DNA from: Guillardia theta CCMP2712
Taxonomy: Eukaryota > Protista > Cryptophyta
DNA: 55,372 nt
Direction: 5' to 3'
NCBI RefSeq assembly: GCF_000315625.1
Contig: NW_005434665.1
Location: 849,188-904,559, forward strand
How positions within the stretch are numbered: position 1 is the stretch's first letter; every line of letters begins with the position of its first letter. The notes under the pieces are model-generated. The model saw only the letters and a program-made list of their open reading frames with translations. It did no database searches and was not told the origin of the DNA. Shown in pieces: positions 20,155-27,935 of the stretch. The position numbers and the translations under genes are program-made.

Positions 20155-20680
20155 CAAAGGGTGGGTGATAGAAGTCAGAAGGAGGGGTCATGCTACAACC
20201 TGACTTTTTGATTGGAAAAGAGATGAGTAAAATGAAGGGAACAGTATACTAAGGGGTGGGGTATTCAGACGGTGGGTGAGGTATCATGATGGAGGTGAAA
20301 GGAAGGGGTCATGGACAAACTATGGGTAGGGAAAGCAAGATCAAAGACCGGTAGGGTACTTAAAGTAGGGGTAATGAAAATATAAAGGGGTGGTAGGTGT
20401 AAGGGGTGGTCCCTGGTACTACTTTGTTTGGGGGCAAAAGAAGCAACTAGTCGAGATGATCTGGGATTTCAAGAAGGTTTTGACAGGGGTAGGGGTAGGA
20501 TAGGTCAGGGTAATGGATAAAGAAGGGTGGGTACTCTCAAATGTATCATCGAAAATGAAGGGTCATCTGGGTATTTTTATTTAGTCAGATGGTTGGTAGG
20601 GGTGTGATATTTAGGGGTAGCAAGAAAAAGGGTGGGTCTTTGTAAAAATGACACAAGCAGGGTGGGGTGGTGATCTCGTT
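20155..20680. promoter_or_regulatory. GGGGTA/GGGTGG-rich intergenic tract between divergent NEMF and U-box genes
   Basis: Many ggggta/gggtag/gggtgg motifs on the + strand, flanked by a CT-rich tract on the left and a GA-rich tract on the right. Confidence 0.4.
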
Positions 20681-21456
20681 CAGTACTCTATGGCGCAAGG
20701 AGCGTGACTGCAGTGAGAGGATGTGTGGGGCGATGGCAGGGGAGAGGGGAAAGGCGAAAGATAGGTATGGTTCGGGAGAGAGGATGAAGAAAACAGGAAG
20801 AGTGAAAGAAGAGGAGGAGAAAACAAGGAAAGCGTAGGGGAGGAAGGTTTGGGAAAGAAGCATGTTCGATTACCAACCATTCAAATCGGGTCGAGGTTGG
20901 AGGAATGGGCGTGGAAGATGCGAAGATGACGAGCGGTACCAGTAAAGCGAAAGTAAGTTCGAGGAGCACAGACAGCAGGGGACGAGGAATGATGGAGGGA
21001 GGGAACAGAAGTCCATCGAAGCGAACGGTAAAAAGTCAGAACCATTGTAGCTTCAACTATGTCAGATGATGATGGATGGGCGGTTTGTAGAGATGAGAGG
21101 GTTGGGTACAAAGTAGCAGATGATGATGCGAAGATATTTGTCGAAGGGTAGATGCGAACATGATGATGTACTCGAAGTGCAGGGAATTTTATCACCTGCC
21201 TTCGGTCTGCAACGTATCGAAACAAACTCAGTCTACACTAGCACAACAACCCAACATGCATACCTTGCAGTGAGTCAGAATCATTGTAGAGAATAGGGTA
21301 ACAGACGAGTTCGAAAGGTGCGATGGGTGGTTCGTTCTGTTGAGGGTCCCTATCATCTTCGACCTTTCCGACTGATTGAAGTGTTGCAGCCAGTTTACGG
21401 CACGAAAGATGGCTTGAGGTGCAAACAGGACGAGGAAGGATTGTTGAGACTCGGCC

Positions 21457-24400
21457 ATGATGCAGCACGAAGTATCGATATCGAAGGACTTTGAGGACAT
21501 GCCGCCTTCCTTCATCTGTCCCATCACGAATGAGATGATGCGGGATCCTGGTATGTTCTGGTGTTGGAGCATGGCAGTGTGGTGACTTACCTGCAGTTTC
21601 CACGTGTGACGGGCACAGCTATGAAAGGAGCGCGATAGAGGATTGGTTGCAGAAGCACAACACGAGCCCAGTGACGAACCTTCTGCTGGAGAGCACCATC
21701 CTTATCCCCGTGCATGCGCTGAGGAACAGCATCGAGGAATGGTGCCAGAAGAAGGTGAAGTCGGTGCTGAAGCTGTCTGACTTGAAGATGGACGAGATTG
21801 CTCTCCATTCTAACTCCACCAAGGAGATCTTTCGAGCGGAGACCAAGAAGTCTGGGATGCCTTCGAGCGTTGCCGTCTTGAAGCTCTCAAAACACGCAAA
21901 GCTGAAAGAAGCCAACCTCTTCATGAAGATCAGCAATCATCCATCCATCGTCAGCTTCTTCGGCTTGTGCTATGAAGATAACGAACGATACCTTGTGACC
22001 GAGTACTCGGAGCACGGGTCTGTGAATGATGCCATGGAGCGATTTGAGGACGATTTCACCATGCAGCACAAGCTTGTGATAGTCCAGCAGGCATGCAGCG
22101 CGATGTCCTACTTGTCGGACTCGTCTCTGCTCCACGGCAATCTGCAAGCGAGGAATATCTTGTTGTTTGAGTTCGACAAAGAAGATCACTCAAAGCTGGT
22201 TGCCAAGATCTCTGACTGTCTGCACCCCCTGCAGCAGTACGATGATGCAAACTTCGCCTCTGACTACTTGAGGAGGGTACGATACCTTCCGCCGGAGACC
22301 CTGATGAAGAGGAGGTTCACCACCAAGAGTGACGTGTGGGCCTTCGCTGTCACGGCCTGGGAGATCATATCGGGAGGCATGCTTCCGTACTGGGAGCTGG
22401 CGGATGAAGCAGAGGTGAAGCGTAAGGTGTCGCAGGGCTACCGACTTGCGAGGCCGCAAGAGCTTGACAACCACTGGGAGCAGCTCTGGAAGACCCTGAG
22501 AGACTGCTGGGATACAAACCCCAAGGCCCGTCCTTCTTTTCAGGACATCCTGTCGTCGGTGTCTGCAGAGGAGGGCGCTGCAGCTGCAGCTACTGTACCT
22601 GTTGAGCCAGCCGCGGGTTCAGAGGGGAATCGATCAGGTTCTCCTGAATCGCCTCAGAAGAAGCGGCAGCTGAGTGCGGTCGAGTCATCTGAGGGAGGAG
22701 GAGGCGGGGGTTCGAGTGCTGGGCAGCACCCTGCAAAGATTGCAAGGGCAGCTGAGCATGCAAAGCCGTCGGAGGCGTCCATGGTGGGCAAGATCCCACA
22801 AGACGTGAACTCGAGTTCGAGACCAGGTGGGGACCAGCAGCAGGTGGAGTTCTCGGGGAGAGTCACCTACTTTGCGGGCTCCAAGGAAGCCTTCATGGAG
22901 TCGATAGATGGGAAGGTTCTGGGTTTCATCCCCAGCGCGATATGGCAAAGCCAAAGCCCGACCCTGGGGATCAATGACCTGGTCAAGGCCATGGCGGTCC
23001 CCATGCTGAACAACCCGCAGCAGTACGAGGTTGTCAGGATTGTCGATGTCAGGAAGAGCTCGAGCGAGCAGCCAGTTGTGTCGCCCCTGATCAGGGACAC
23101 TGTCGTGAAGAAGGAGAAGATCGACCCCAGCCCACCAGCTAGCAGCACAACGCTGAGCTCGTTCCTCCACGGGGACAGCACGCAAGCGCAGCAGAGCCGG
23201 AGCCCGTTGGTGAGCAGGCCAGACGATCTTTCATCGTCCTTCTCAGGCCTCGCGCGATCGGCGAAGACAACCAGAGCTGGCGACCAAGTTGATGGGGAGG
23301 TGAAGGAGAGCCCCACCGGGGTGAAGGAGGATGCGTCAAGGCCATCGTCGAAGCCATCTGGTGTCTTGTGCTTCTTGATTGTTTCTTGGAAATGACGAGA
23401 GGATGCAGAGAGCTGGAGGCAGGTCGTTGAAAGTGACGCCTATGATCCCGTGGCAGCGTTTGAAAGCGATCCAAGGGAGGAAGAGAGCAGACGCATGACT
23501 TCGACTCATTCGCGACAGTGAGCCTTCTACCTCGAATCCTTCAAAACCCTCCACTCCCCCCCCACACCTTTCTTCCGCAATCTTGTTTAAACGATTTCCT
23601 CCCTCCAGTTTCTTTCTTTTTCGTGTTTGTTCCTCCCACTCCCGTCGTTCTCCCACTTCTTCCTGCTGATCATGTTCTCAGAAGCCCCCATAGATCTGCC
23701 GCCTCAAATCAGGAGGCGATTGCTCTGGCTCCCGCACCTTCGCCTCCCGTGCAAGACAACGGGATGCATGTGCTGGGCGCCTTTGCGACCTATGGCTGCG
23801 CGAAGGATTACAAGACGGTGGTATCGATGAAGGATGAGGTGGTTGCCATCGCTCGGAGGATCGATGCGGATCAACCGAAGCTGGCGATGGTGATTTTCAA
23901 GGGGCTGGGGGAGGCATACTTCAGCTTGGGGAACTACAGGAACTCCCTCGAGATGCACCACGATCAGCTGAGAATCGCTGACAAGATCGGGGACGATGAG
24001 AACAAGAAGATCGCCTACAAGTGCCTGCACAGGGCGTACGTGCTGCTCAAGGACGTGAAGATGCAGGAGAAGACTCTGAAGAGCCTCCTTGACGTCTGTC
24101 ACACTTGTGTGGATGTTCAGACCGAGATTGACACCTTGAGGGAGCTGGAGGGGCTCTACATCGCGACGAAGGACAGGTTCAACTTGATCGAGACCCTGAG
24201 CAAGCTGCTCAGGATCTACACCGAGACTCAGATGACAGACGCGGCGAAGCGGGTCAGGGCCCACCTGACCTCCCTCATGGCGGAGGTGGAAAGGGAGCTG
24301 GAGAGGACCTCGTCTTCCTCGGAGGACTTCAGCAAGCGCTACCTCGACTACGGGAACATTCTCCATGCGCTGGGTAAGTTCGATCAGGCCGTGGATATCT

Positions 24401-26169
24401 ACAGGAAGTTTGTCCGGTCGGATCAGGGTGGAAAAGCCTCGAGCAAGGAGCCGATGGCGCAAGAGCAGCCCCGATCATGGGACAAGCAGGAGAGAAAGGG
24501 GAGACCGGACTCAAGCTCTGGAAGCAGCAGCAAGAGGCCCTACGAATCCAGCGATGGAGTTCACGACGACGGCGATCGGCATAAGAAGAGGGACCTTCCC
24601 TCTCTGCGATTTACCGGGAGTATCCTGACCATCCTAAACTCCAGCGCCATCCTGGAGTCGGAGTACGATTCTAGCAAGATCGAGGTTCCGTACGACCTCT
24701 TCAAGCAGAGCAAGACCTACGTCAGGATCGGTTCGAAGCTGACGGTTGAGGCGCGGAGGTGTCCTCCCAACGAGACGGAAGCGACTTACCTGGCGACTGC
24801 CATCGTCAATGATGGCGCGGGAGCAGCGGATAGTGGACACGGGAGCAAGCAGAACCCTGGGCCGTCGGGAGGAGGCGACAGGAGTCCGTTAGGAGAAAAG
24901 TCGTACGAGGTTGGCGTCACGATTGAAGTTGTGAGGGAAGGGATCAAGAAGATGTTCGCCGTCCGATCGATCGTGCGAGGAAGCACCGCAGACATGCAGG
25001 GGCTGCTCGTTGGTGACGTCATCATCAGCATCGACAACACGCCATGCGCTGGGATGAGCTTCGAGCAGGTCGAGTCGAGGCTGCGCGGGCCCAAGGACTC
25101 GGTGGTGAGGCTCAAGTACGAGAGGCAGAGGTCGCGCAACCAGGACTACGTCTCCGTCGGCTTCGTGTCGCTCTGCTGTACCATCCCCGTCTCCCACGTC
25201 TCCCAGAGCAGCTCCTTGTCCTCGGAGGCGAAGAGAGCCTTTCGCATCCTCAAGGAGTCGCTGGAGAACTTGCAGGACCGAGCGACGAAGCTGAATGTGA
25301 GTGAGGTGACGGATTGATCGCTTCCTGACCTGGCGGCCAGAACTGGCTGGATTGGGCGTTCTCTGTCGAGGGAAAGTTTGCCGGCCCCATTGCAGCCCGA
25401 CACATCAAGGCGGAGCTGAGCTCTCGGCTGGTGGCGATGGGGAAGGGTTCCTTCTCGGAGAAGGTGAGAGGAGAAAGGGGAGGAGGGTGGACGAGCACGA
25501 GCACGAGCACGAGGAGCTGAGGGGACTGATGAAGGAGCTGAGGGGGCGAGCAGTTCAAAGTGGAGAGGGGGTGATGGATGAGGGAGTGTTTGTTTCCTGC
25601 ATGCCGAAATTTTACGATCTACAGGACCTTGGCTACTCTCGTTTCTCGGATTTTCTACAAGATGCCATGGATCACGGTAAGTTGCTGCCGATGTCTCGCA
25701 TCCTACTGTCTTCTTCCTTCCTTTTTGCCTTGTCTCCTCCCCTCTCCTGTTTTCTCCTCTCCTCTACTCCTGTGTCCTCTCCCCTCTCCTCTCCTCTCCG
25801 CTCCTTATCTTCCCTCCTCTTGTCCTCTCCTCCCCTACCCTCCCCTACCCTCTCCTCTCGTCTGCTCTCGTCTCGTCTCGTCTCGTCTCGTCTCCTCTCC
25901 TCTCCTCATGTCTTGGTCGCCTTGCAGGAGTGGTGACCATCATCTGGGTGGAGAACAAGGTCTGGGTTGACACCTTCGGGTCAAAGTTCGTGGCCCCGAA
26001 GCTGGTCAAGAAGGTGGAGGCGAAGAACATCTGCCGTCACTGGCAGAGAGGCTACTGCAAGGACGGGGCCATTTGCCCATACATTCACAATGAGAGCTGC
26101 AAGCTCTGGCTCAGATACGGCCACTGCCCCCGGGGCTCCAAGTGCTCCCTGCTGCACATGTACACATGA
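21457..26169 (+). CDS. Multidomain protein: U-box, tyrosine-kinase-like pseudokinase, OB/CSD-like, TPR, OB/CSD-like, PDZ, LOTUS/OST-HTH, 2x CCCH zinc finger
   Basis: U-box PPSFICPITNEMMRDP|VSTCDGHSYERSAIEDWLQKHNTSPVTN (intron 21551-21596). Kinase HPSIVSFFG...HGNLQARNILL...KISD...RYLPPE...KSDVWAF. TPR LGEAYFSLGNYRNSLEMH. PDZ VGVTI...GLLVGDVIISID...LRGPKDSVVRL. LOTUS FSEK|DLGYSRFSDFL. CRHWQRGYCKDGAICPYIH and CKLWLRYGHCPRGSKCSLLH*. The junction at 23360-23690 is inferred. Confidence 0.8.
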
Positions 26170-26286
26170 GGGGGCGAGAGGAGGGGGCGACATGGGAGGG
26201 ACGAGGAGGGGTTCGGAGGGTTTTTGTAACATATCAGTGAATGAGTTAAGTATGATAACGGGAGCGGAGCGTTCATGGCAATCTCA

Positions 26287-27935
26287 TCAGAGCTCTCTCC
26301 CCGCCCGCCTGCCCCCCTCCTGATACTCGCTGATGACGTTGGTGCAGTGCTGCATCCAGTCCACTAGCTCCTTCCAGAGGCTCTCTATCACCTCCCGCCA
26401 GTCCACCTGAGGATACGCCATCATGATCGCCCTCCGTAGAACCTGCAAGACCGTCAGGCTCGCTGGCGCCTTCCCCCGCCCTCGTCCTACCAAGACGAAG
26501 ATGCAGCTGAGGAGGAAGCGGATGACGGAGTTGAGGAAAAGCTCGTCCTCCGAGGGAGGAGGCACGTTGTGCCCCTCGACCCTCGTCAGTCGCTGCCTGT
26601 GCGTCCTCACCGCCCGTGGCACCTCTGCCCGAGCTGGAGCTCTCCCCTGCAGGCCCCTCAGCTCAGCCCTGCGCGCAAGCCCTCTGCTCACCATCGTGTG
26701 CTGCGGAGGACGAGCTTCGTTCCTCTGCACGCCAGTCCGCTGGACGGCAGCTGGGCTACTCGAGGCTGGAGGGGCCACAGCTGGGATGACAAGTCAGGCA
26801 GTCGAGCAGCTGGCGATCAGCTCACCTGCGCTCTCAGCAGCAGGAGTGACGCAACTTCCTCCCTCCTCCCCCGCTGACTCGCCATGTCGAGCTCCATCGC
26901 GGCCCCCCATGCCCGCAGCGCTCGGGGCTCCCTCCTGGCGAACAGCTGAAGGTGCTGCTGGGCCTTCTTGAGCCTCCCTCCCCTCCTGCACGCTCGGGGT
27001 GGCTGCTGGGGCAGCAGCAGCAGCACTCGCCGCGCCCCTGCCTCCTGCCGCGGCAGGGGAGGAGCCAGCTGGGGAAGTGTGGGCTCGTTGCAAGAAGTCT
27101 TGGAAGGCTTCCAGCATCCTGTTGGGCGTTAGCTGAGCGATAGGAGCGATAGGGGGATCGCTCACCCGTGGGTGCGGAGGGAGGCGGCCGAGTTCTCCTT
27201 GGATTTCTCCGCTAGCTTTCTGAGCAGCCGATCAGCCCGCACTCTCCTGTCTCTCCCCCTCACCTCCTCTCCTCGTCGCTGTAGTCGAGAGCCGCGATGG
27301 CTCCGTTCCCCGGAGTCGGCATGAAGCTCTGGATGGCAGTGAGGGCTGCAGTGGAGACGCGTCAGACGAGTCCAGCACCAGTCCAGCTGAACACTAGCTG
27401 ACGGACCTGTACGGATATCCCAACCAGGCTGCCATAGCTCGGGGTGGTGCTGGGAGATGCTGAGGCAGATCTTCTTGCCGACCTCGAACCTCCCCTGAGG
27501 GCACAGGAACATGAACTCTGGAGGCTTGTGGGGGTACTGAGGACGGGAAATCTATCAGCGTCTTTTGAAACTGACAGGGCAGCATCGAAACTCTCACGCT
27601 CGCTTTCAAAGCACACCTCATCGCGACACAGCAACCAGCACATCAGTCAGGGAGCAAACGTCACCTGCGACGGTAGGATGATCCTGCCATGGTAGAGCCC
27701 TCCAGCGAACGGAGTGTCGGAAGGTCCTCGCAGCACAAAGTGCCAGTCGAACAAGTTCTCCTCGACCGGGTGAGCTTCAAAATCGTCGGACGGGTCCGCT
27801 TGCTGATCGTTACATGCACCCAAGTAAGCGGTGCAGCTGAGGAGGTAAAGGGAGCTTAGGGGGTCTCACCAGTTTCTTCAATTCACTCAGAATCCTACGA
27901 ATAGCAGGATTGTTTGTGTTAAGCTGTGAAGACAT
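26287..27935 (-). CDS. UBE2J1: ER-anchored ubiquitin-conjugating enzyme, Ubc6/UBE2J1 class (multi-exon)
   Basis: MSSQLNTNNPAIRRILSELKKL, AHPVEENLFDWHFVLRGPSDTPFAGGLYHGRIILP, YPHKPPEFMFLCPQGRFEVGKKICLSISQHHPELWQPGWDIRT, FMPTPGNGAIAALDY; C-terminal TM VIRFLLSCIFVLV. Confidence 0.92.

Follow-up and report, generated by a model that had tools for sequence, protein, structure and literature searches.

A seven-exon gene of Guillardia theta encodes a candidate RNA-associated U-box ubiquitin ligase with a predicted pseudokinase domain

The window analyzed here is a stretch of 55,372 nucleotides (nt) from the cryptophyte Guillardia theta CCMP2712 (GCF_000315625.1, contig NW_005434665.1, positions 849,188 to 904,559), in which positions 21457-26169 of the plus strand hold one expressed nuclear gene with a product of 1,332 amino acids (aa). 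Its single spliced frame joins a U-box, a kinase-fold domain predicted to be inactive, a TPR array, a PDZ domain, two terminal CCCH zinc fingers and two further conserved units. Judging from these modules, we lean slightly towards reading the product, a putatively cytosolic or nuclear protein, as a U-box E3 ubiquitin ligase that would be recruited to RNA or ribonucleoprotein (RNP) particles and would ubiquitinate nearby proteins.

In a six-frame view, the plus strand shows long open frames at 21647-23395 and 23518-25317, followed by only short ones. To establish the gene structure, four public sequencing runs (X1, X2, X14, and X19) were aligned to positions 21300-26400; X1 and X2, from two separate studies, have the character of cDNA assemblies, and X14 consists of genomic DNA contigs. 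A 5,724-nt contig from X1 (word depth 250) is collinear with 21300-26400 and skips six segments. The first five of these introns are listed as GT..AG joints in X1, X2 shows all five, and the X14 contigs read straight through them, unspliced. At intron 6, the flanking exons abut in the X1 record (4422>4423), with the joint sitting in a CT-rich repeat that is masked by the repeat filter of the joint listing; one X14 contig enters this intron and ends at 25723, and none crosses the whole of it. The raw RNA-seq run X19 contributed 13 reads, all at the 3′ end and too few for joints. The seven exons total 3,999 nt, corresponding to 1,332 codons and a stop, with no in-frame internal stop, in agreement with the original prediction that one frame links the domains after splicing. 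The start at ATG 21457 is fixed by an in-frame TGA (21445-21447) lying 12 nt upstream within the same mRNA piece, and the open reading frame (ORF) of the Hanusia phi orthologue (P0151) starts at the same place.

Exon 1 (21457-21550) encodes the first third of the U-box (PPSFICPITNEMMRDP), which is interrupted by intron 1 (21551-21596, 46 nt), a segment spliced out in X1 and X2 and retained in the X14 DNA. Exon 2 (21597-23360) carries the remaining U-box, the kinase-like domain and, between two linkers, the unit proposed as a first OB domain (OB1). Intron 2 (23361-23408, 48 nt), exon 3 (23409-23517, 109 nt, an acidic linker), and the CT-rich intron 3 (23518-23681, 164 nt) lead to exon 4 (23682-25296), which encodes the TPR array, the second proposed OB unit (OB2), the PDZ domain and a C-terminal helix. 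Intron 4 (25297-25340, 44 nt) is followed by exon 5 (25341-25463, 123 nt), the proposed N-terminal half of a LOTUS domain, intron 5 (25464-25624, 161 nt), and exon 6 (25625-25676, 52 nt), which encodes DLGYSRFSDFLQDAMDH. After intron 6 (25677-25927, 251 nt), CT-rich and containing a TCTCGTC-type repeat, exon 7 (25928-26169) encodes the beta-hairpin-like VVTIIWVENKVWV, a basic linker and the two CCCH fingers, and ends in the stop codon TGA at 26167-26169. All six introns lie, like the exons, on the plus strand and are of the GT..AG type. The two gaps flagged by the original prediction as needing transcript evidence thus resolve into two introns with the 109-nt exon (23360-23690), and three introns with the exons of 123 and 52 nt (25297-25927). 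Transcripts ending near 23400 would have indicated two genes; instead, spliced contigs cross 23361-23681, and the apparent frame break near 23400 arises because an in-frame TGA (23393-23395) lies inside intron 2.

On the coding strand, the two longest introns, 3 and 6, have a strong CT bias (GC skew to -0.54, AT skew to -0.61), and intron 6 contains the TCTCGTC-type microsatellite at 25850-25895. The X14 DNA differs from the window by one base in length at 23556, within a C run of intron 3.

In Hanusia phi, both halves of the protein are encoded on one transcript (record 758085, ORFs.1 and.2), and each ORF ends by running into sequence that matches a retained intron. These ORFs, ~640 aa each, were the only full-length relatives returned by searches with exons 2 and 4. 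No product of ~1,330 aa was present in the protein collections searched, an absence that the length limits of the searches make weakly informative, and a region search with a 970-aa relative (P0154) likewise returned none. For annotation, the result is a seven-exon model that includes three exons of 52 to 123 nt.

Profile, Pfam, and fold scans were run exon by exon. The U-box (21502-21757), which spans intron 1, matches PF04564 with 37.7 bits on exon 2 alone, above the curated cut-off of 21.4, and with a further 16.4 bits on exon 1 (profile positions 2-17). Its exon-2 part is the best-conserved segment of the protein, 98% identical to Hanusia phi, and it keeps the pattern CPI...DP...GHSYER...W...SP.T that is common to all relatives aligned. 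The domain that follows (21860-22558) has a clear kinase fold (PF07714, 177 bits, 5e-52), but in an alignment with relatives it reads HGNLQARN for HRDLAARN, SDCL for DFGL, and NSTKEI with no glycine-rich loop. The Hanusia phi orthologue has the same HGN, SDCL, and NSTKEI substitutions. In contrast, HRDLAARN or HCDLAARN and DFG or DYG are retained in P0152-P0154, relatives from haptophytes and metagenomes, and in L188, the closest paralogue in the genome, with GS[FS]K (P0152-P0154) or GSNK (L188) in the glycine-loop region. Because the kinase fold is recognized and neither Guillardia nor Hanusia keeps the HRD, DFG, or glycine-loop motif, the domain is predicted to be a pseudokinase whose catalytic residues have disappeared. 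Both the U-box and the pseudokinase of the original prediction are thus upheld.

Other paralogues in the genome, together with the relative P0155, are degenerate in different ways, with HRDLAARH accompanied by AG[YF]G, or with HRNL, HQDL, or HRKL, and this variety points to repeated loss of catalysis in the U-box-kinase family. Eight near-identical paralogues form one such block (L192-L199, on contigs C74, C192, C337, C207, C62, C361, C300, and C363), in which HRDLAARH (HRNLAARH in L192) and AG[YF]G replace HRDLAARN and DFG; on sequence grounds, the family has thus reached a dead kinase a second time, by an independent route. One member of the block, L196, has an ARM/HEAT repeat tail by Pfam. 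The haptophyte-type relatives P0152 and P0153 have no beta-3 lysine (VAVLC and IAVLR) and retain a lysine at the glycine-loop position (GSFKTV).

The genome (87.1 Mb, 669 contigs) and public protein collections were searched for relatives. The U-box-kinase head matches P0152-P0156 with E-values of 1e-34 to 1e-62 over 54-57% of the exon-2 query, and at least 17 loci in the genome match the whole head (query residues ~1-320) with 34-39% identity. The same order of U-box and PK_Tyr_Ser-Thr domain occurs in Emiliania huxleyi EMIHUDRAFT_62203 (P0153) and in many proteins from marine metagenomes and transcriptomes (P0152 to P0156, P0165 to P0186). The gene, by its sequence, belongs as a variant to a large protist U-box and tyrosine-kinase-like family, and it does not found an entirely new protein class; the statement in the original prediction that its architecture matches no described family was too strong, given how common the head is in protists and that this genome has at least 17 full-length head paralogues. 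What sets the variant apart is its tail. All five head paralogues scanned for tails carry ARM/HEAT repeats, and the tails of relatives comprise ARM/HEAT, ubiquitin, UBA, FYVE, and single TPR or PDZ modules, with no CCCH listed among them. A common origin of this tail with the TPR tail of P0169 or the PDZ tail of P0182 was considered and rejected, as neither shows specific similarity to it. Among 1.84 billion representatives, the Hanusia phi ORF alone matches exon 4 (TPR through PDZ) over its full length, the remaining matches being generic TPR or PDZ, and in the searches made the exact domain combination occurs only in Guillardia and Hanusia phi.

The TPR array (23758-24429) consists of ~six helical hairpins of the LGN/Pins and kinesin-light-chain (KLC) type. 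The AlphaFold (AF2) model of exon 4 is confident for residues 26-249, with 12 helices and a predicted local distance difference test score (pLDDT) of 65-90, and a Foldseek search against the PDB places the LGN/Pins and KLC TPRs first, at ~2e-6 and probability 1.00. The TPR call therefore stands, although the single Pfam models TPR_12, TPR_7, and TPR_8 score 24-26 bits, 1-4 bits under their cut-offs. As identity to these best structural matches is only 13-23%, with TM-scores of 0.2-0.5, the likeness is one of fold class and not of orthology. The PDZ domain (24898-25137) exceeds the cut-offs of two models, PF17820 (40.2 bits against 27) and PF00595 (38.4 bits against 23.2), as had been proposed. 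Identity to Hanusia phi is 81% in the TPR array and 77% in the PDZ domain; overall, the domain islands are 73-98% identical, compared with 36-66% in the linkers.

The case for contact with RNA begins with the C-terminal fingers, at 26032-26088 (C-x7-C-x5-C-x3-H) and 26098-26157 (C-x8-C-x5-C-x3-H). PF00642 (zf-CCCH) recognizes them with 43.5 bits in two stretches, above its cut-off, and the ligand spacings are canonical, which confirms this part of the original prediction. In general, CCCH fingers in tandem are binders of single-stranded RNA. With an intact-looking U-box at one end of the protein and two canonical CCCH fingers at the other, it can fairly be read as a ubiquitin ligase capable of binding RNA. 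The original prediction had described a scaffold coupling RNA sensing to ubiquitination; the U-box and the fingers make that plausible. Three of its eight domain calls, the two OB units and LOTUS, gained no significant support from the profile searches run exon by exon, a failure that it had listed among the outcomes counting against it.

Two segments had been proposed as OB/CSD-like. OB1 (22832-23056) is 73% identical to Hanusia phi, compared with 48-59% in the flanking linkers, and OB2 (24601-24810) is 76% identical, compared with 46-66% in linkers, so that both are real conserved modules as judged by sequence conservation. Neither has a Pfam match even at E-values up to 10, neither was picked up in genome scans with PF22707 and PF14444, and no paralogues of either were found in the genome. 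For OB1, Atlas, a language-model look-alike search, gave S1CSD-TOTE-2 at 0.93 with 176 shared features, a recognition below its reliability threshold; for OB2 the best value was 0.86, with no family. Against our own profile built from 12 bacterial S1CSD-TOTE-2 domains, OB1 can be aligned along 46 columns without a shift in register, yet it scores only 1.9 bits and comes eighth among 657 window tiles. With hhalign, this profile gave P 0.033 for OB1 and P 0.092 for OB2, and a decoy profile gave P 0.086. A PDB sequence search with an OB1 profile returned nothing relevant, and AF2 models from two-sequence alignments were too poor to use (pLDDT 42 for OB1 and ~21-34 for the OB2-PDZ part of exon 4). 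OB1 thus offers a weak S1/CSD-like lead, and for OB2 neither Atlas, our S1CSD profile, nor hhalign gives one. Two further ideas were rejected: that OB1 and OB2 are repeats of each other (BLASTP blank, hhalign P 0.41), and that exon 4 holds a bacterial TOTE-like TPR-OB module (TOTE denoting TPR, OB, TBP, Effector). The bacterial TOTE-type proteins used in the latter comparison, nine in number, have the order TPR-DUF7017-S1CSD1-S1CSD2, and hhalign against them gave P 0.09, with generic TPR similarity only.

The proposed OST-HTH/LOTUS domain, a winged helix of ~70 residues (PF12872), would span exons 5, 6, and 7. Searches of Pfam and the PDB with exon 5 were blank, and a six-frame scan of the genome with PF12872 did not pick up this locus. 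Against our own LOTUS profile from 33 sequences, the 17 residues of exon 6 rank first among 1,482 window tiles, though with only 3.5-5.7 bits; they match the helix 'yGF.kL..li', the most conserved of the family, at the right profile positions (hhalign P 0.011). Neither exon 5 nor the start of exon 7, each scanned singly, scored against this profile. The one clear OST-HTH/LOTUS match in the genome, at 40.6 bits, lies elsewhere (L001, G000:C22:525210-528419), on the opposite strand to an acetyl-CoA-carboxylase-like open frame and just past its end; no loci related to this LOTUS gene at L001 were found in prokaryote genomes.

Several of these observations weigh against an RNA-directed ligase. The CCCH fingers are the sole verified nucleic-acid-type module in the protein, and fingers of this kind are also able to contact proteins or poly(ADP-ribose). 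The two OB/CSD units found no Pfam match, significant profile score, or usable model, and the LOTUS domain is unsupported by the exon-by-exon profile searches beyond the weak match of exon 6. Moreover, since the paralogues scanned pair the head with protein-binding ARM tails, the default role of the family need not involve RNA. The protein may accordingly be a signaling scaffold that works with proteins only, using the CCCH fingers for protein or poly(ADP-ribose) contacts and ubiquitinating the ligands of its TPR, PDZ, and pseudokinase domains, with no RNA role. This is consistent with the tails of the paralogues and relatives examined (ARM/HEAT, ubiquitin, UBA, TPR, and PDZ), none of which is RNA-binding, and with the unconfirmed OB and LOTUS calls. 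However, pairs of closely spaced canonical CCCH fingers with such a score are typically RNA binders, and OB1 retains its weak S1/CSD lead, so that we regard a protein-only scaffold as a somewhat unlikely account of the gene. A second alternative is that the U-box, like the kinase, is without function and that the protein is a non-catalytic adaptor that only bridges partners. The kinase domain is indeed clearly degenerate, and dead enzymatic domains are frequent in multi-domain families of this genome, but the near-identity of the exon-2 part of the U-box to that of Hanusia phi and the intact sequence pattern of the U-box make this decidedly improbable. Finally, we give next to no credence to two adjacent genes (U-box-kinase and TPR-PDZ-CCCH) fused by chimeric transcript assembly, a model rejected on the spliced contigs across both halves: assembled contigs can bridge overlapping transcripts, and the public Hanusia phi record has the halves as two ORFs, but two independent assemblies share both GT..AG joints and the 109-nt exon, the frame stays open, and the Hanusia phi ORFs lie on one transcript, each ending in an apparent retained intron.

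If the protein is a ubiquitin ligase recruited to RNA, its parts could work together as follows. U-box domains bind E2 ubiquitin-conjugating enzymes, and by analogy this U-box would recruit a charged E2 (E2~ubiquitin). The CCCH fingers, along with the LOTUS-like and S1-like modules if these are real, would attach the protein to mRNA or to RNP particles, and the TPR groove, the PDZ domain and the dead kinase would keep peptide ligands in place. Ubiquitin would then be passed to proteins located on or close to the bound RNAs, in the manner of RING-type RNA-binding ligases. A more elaborate version, in which OB1 and OB2 are S1/CSD-type folds and the LOTUS domain is a true three-exon domain, would make this a U-box ligase with three classes of RNA/RNP-binding module in addition to the pseudokinase, TPR, and PDZ domains. 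We consider this version rather unlikely; if true, it would represent a dedicated RNP-surveillance or granule-remodeling E3, invented in the Guillardia/Hanusia lineage and without counterpart among RING-type RNA-binding ligases.

The surrounding DNA adds several observations. Downstream, a convergent neighbor on the minus strand includes an exon (27399-27524) for the active-site region of an E2 of the Ubc6/UBE2J2 type (PPEFMFLCPQGRFEVGKKICLSISQHHPELWQPGW), which phmmer matches to yeast Ubc6 (3e-9) and human UBE2J2 (3.6e-8); this exon is short and was not recognized by Pfam. An E2 gene thus lies tail-to-tail with the U-box gene, an adjacency that is by itself no evidence of interaction. A minus-strand cDNA contig (X2 record 9; 26207-26400) begins ~40 nt past the stop codon and the X1 contig continues 828 nt beyond 26400; the convergent genes are therefore likely to meet or overlap at their 3′ ends. 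Upstream, positions 20200-21100 form a purine-rich stretch on the plus strand (GC skew to +0.63), and the X1 cDNA contig reaches 509 nt upstream of 21300; part of this stretch may be a long 5′ untranslated region.

Among known systems, the closest are the protist U-box-kinase proteins, which share an N-terminal U-box directly followed by the PK_Tyr_Ser-Thr domain, at 34-39% identity over ~320 residues. They differ in the kinase motifs, since P0152-P0154 and L188 keep HRD and DFG or DYG where this gene has HGN and DCL. In evolutionary terms, the kinase of this common head would have lost its catalytic residues and the usual armadillo tail would have been replaced by the TPR array, the PDZ domain, the two conserved units and the two CCCH fingers, such that in one algal lineage the head was reused with the kinase killed and the armadillo tail swapped for peptide- and RNA-binding modules. 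The gene opens no long-standing question, since this genome often builds elaborate domain fusions on ubiquitin and kinase modules. Plant PUB ligases, among them the PUB-ARM proteins, likewise join a U-box E3 to repeat-type substrate-binding domains, and some carry a kinase. In these kinase-PUBs the kinase precedes the U-box, and plant PUBs are not known to carry CCCH or PDZ domains. In protists and plants, OST-HTH domains have been linked to CCCH, S1/cold-shock OB, U-box, RING, or B-box domains, with no pseudokinase, TPR, or PDZ partners mentioned (Anantharaman, Zhang and Aravind, 2010; PMC2848206). The U-box and CCCH partners are common to those architectures and to the present gene, in which OST-HTH itself is only proposed.

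The nearest functional parallel is with RNA-binding RING E3s. Roquin, Makorin, MEX3, and CNOT4 combine an E2-recruiting domain of treble-clef type with RNA-binding modules in one polypeptide, and Roquin and Makorin do so with CCCH fingers. These proteins have a zinc-binding RING instead of a U-box, and no kinase fold, TPR, or PDZ domain; conversely, no RING profile was found in any exon of this gene, and beyond the CCCH motif the searches made revealed no sequence relationship to them. By this analogy, the Guillardia protein may work like the RING-type RNA-binding E3s while not being a member of that group, and it would extend the RNA-binding ubiquitin ligases, so far RING-based, by a member with a U-box.

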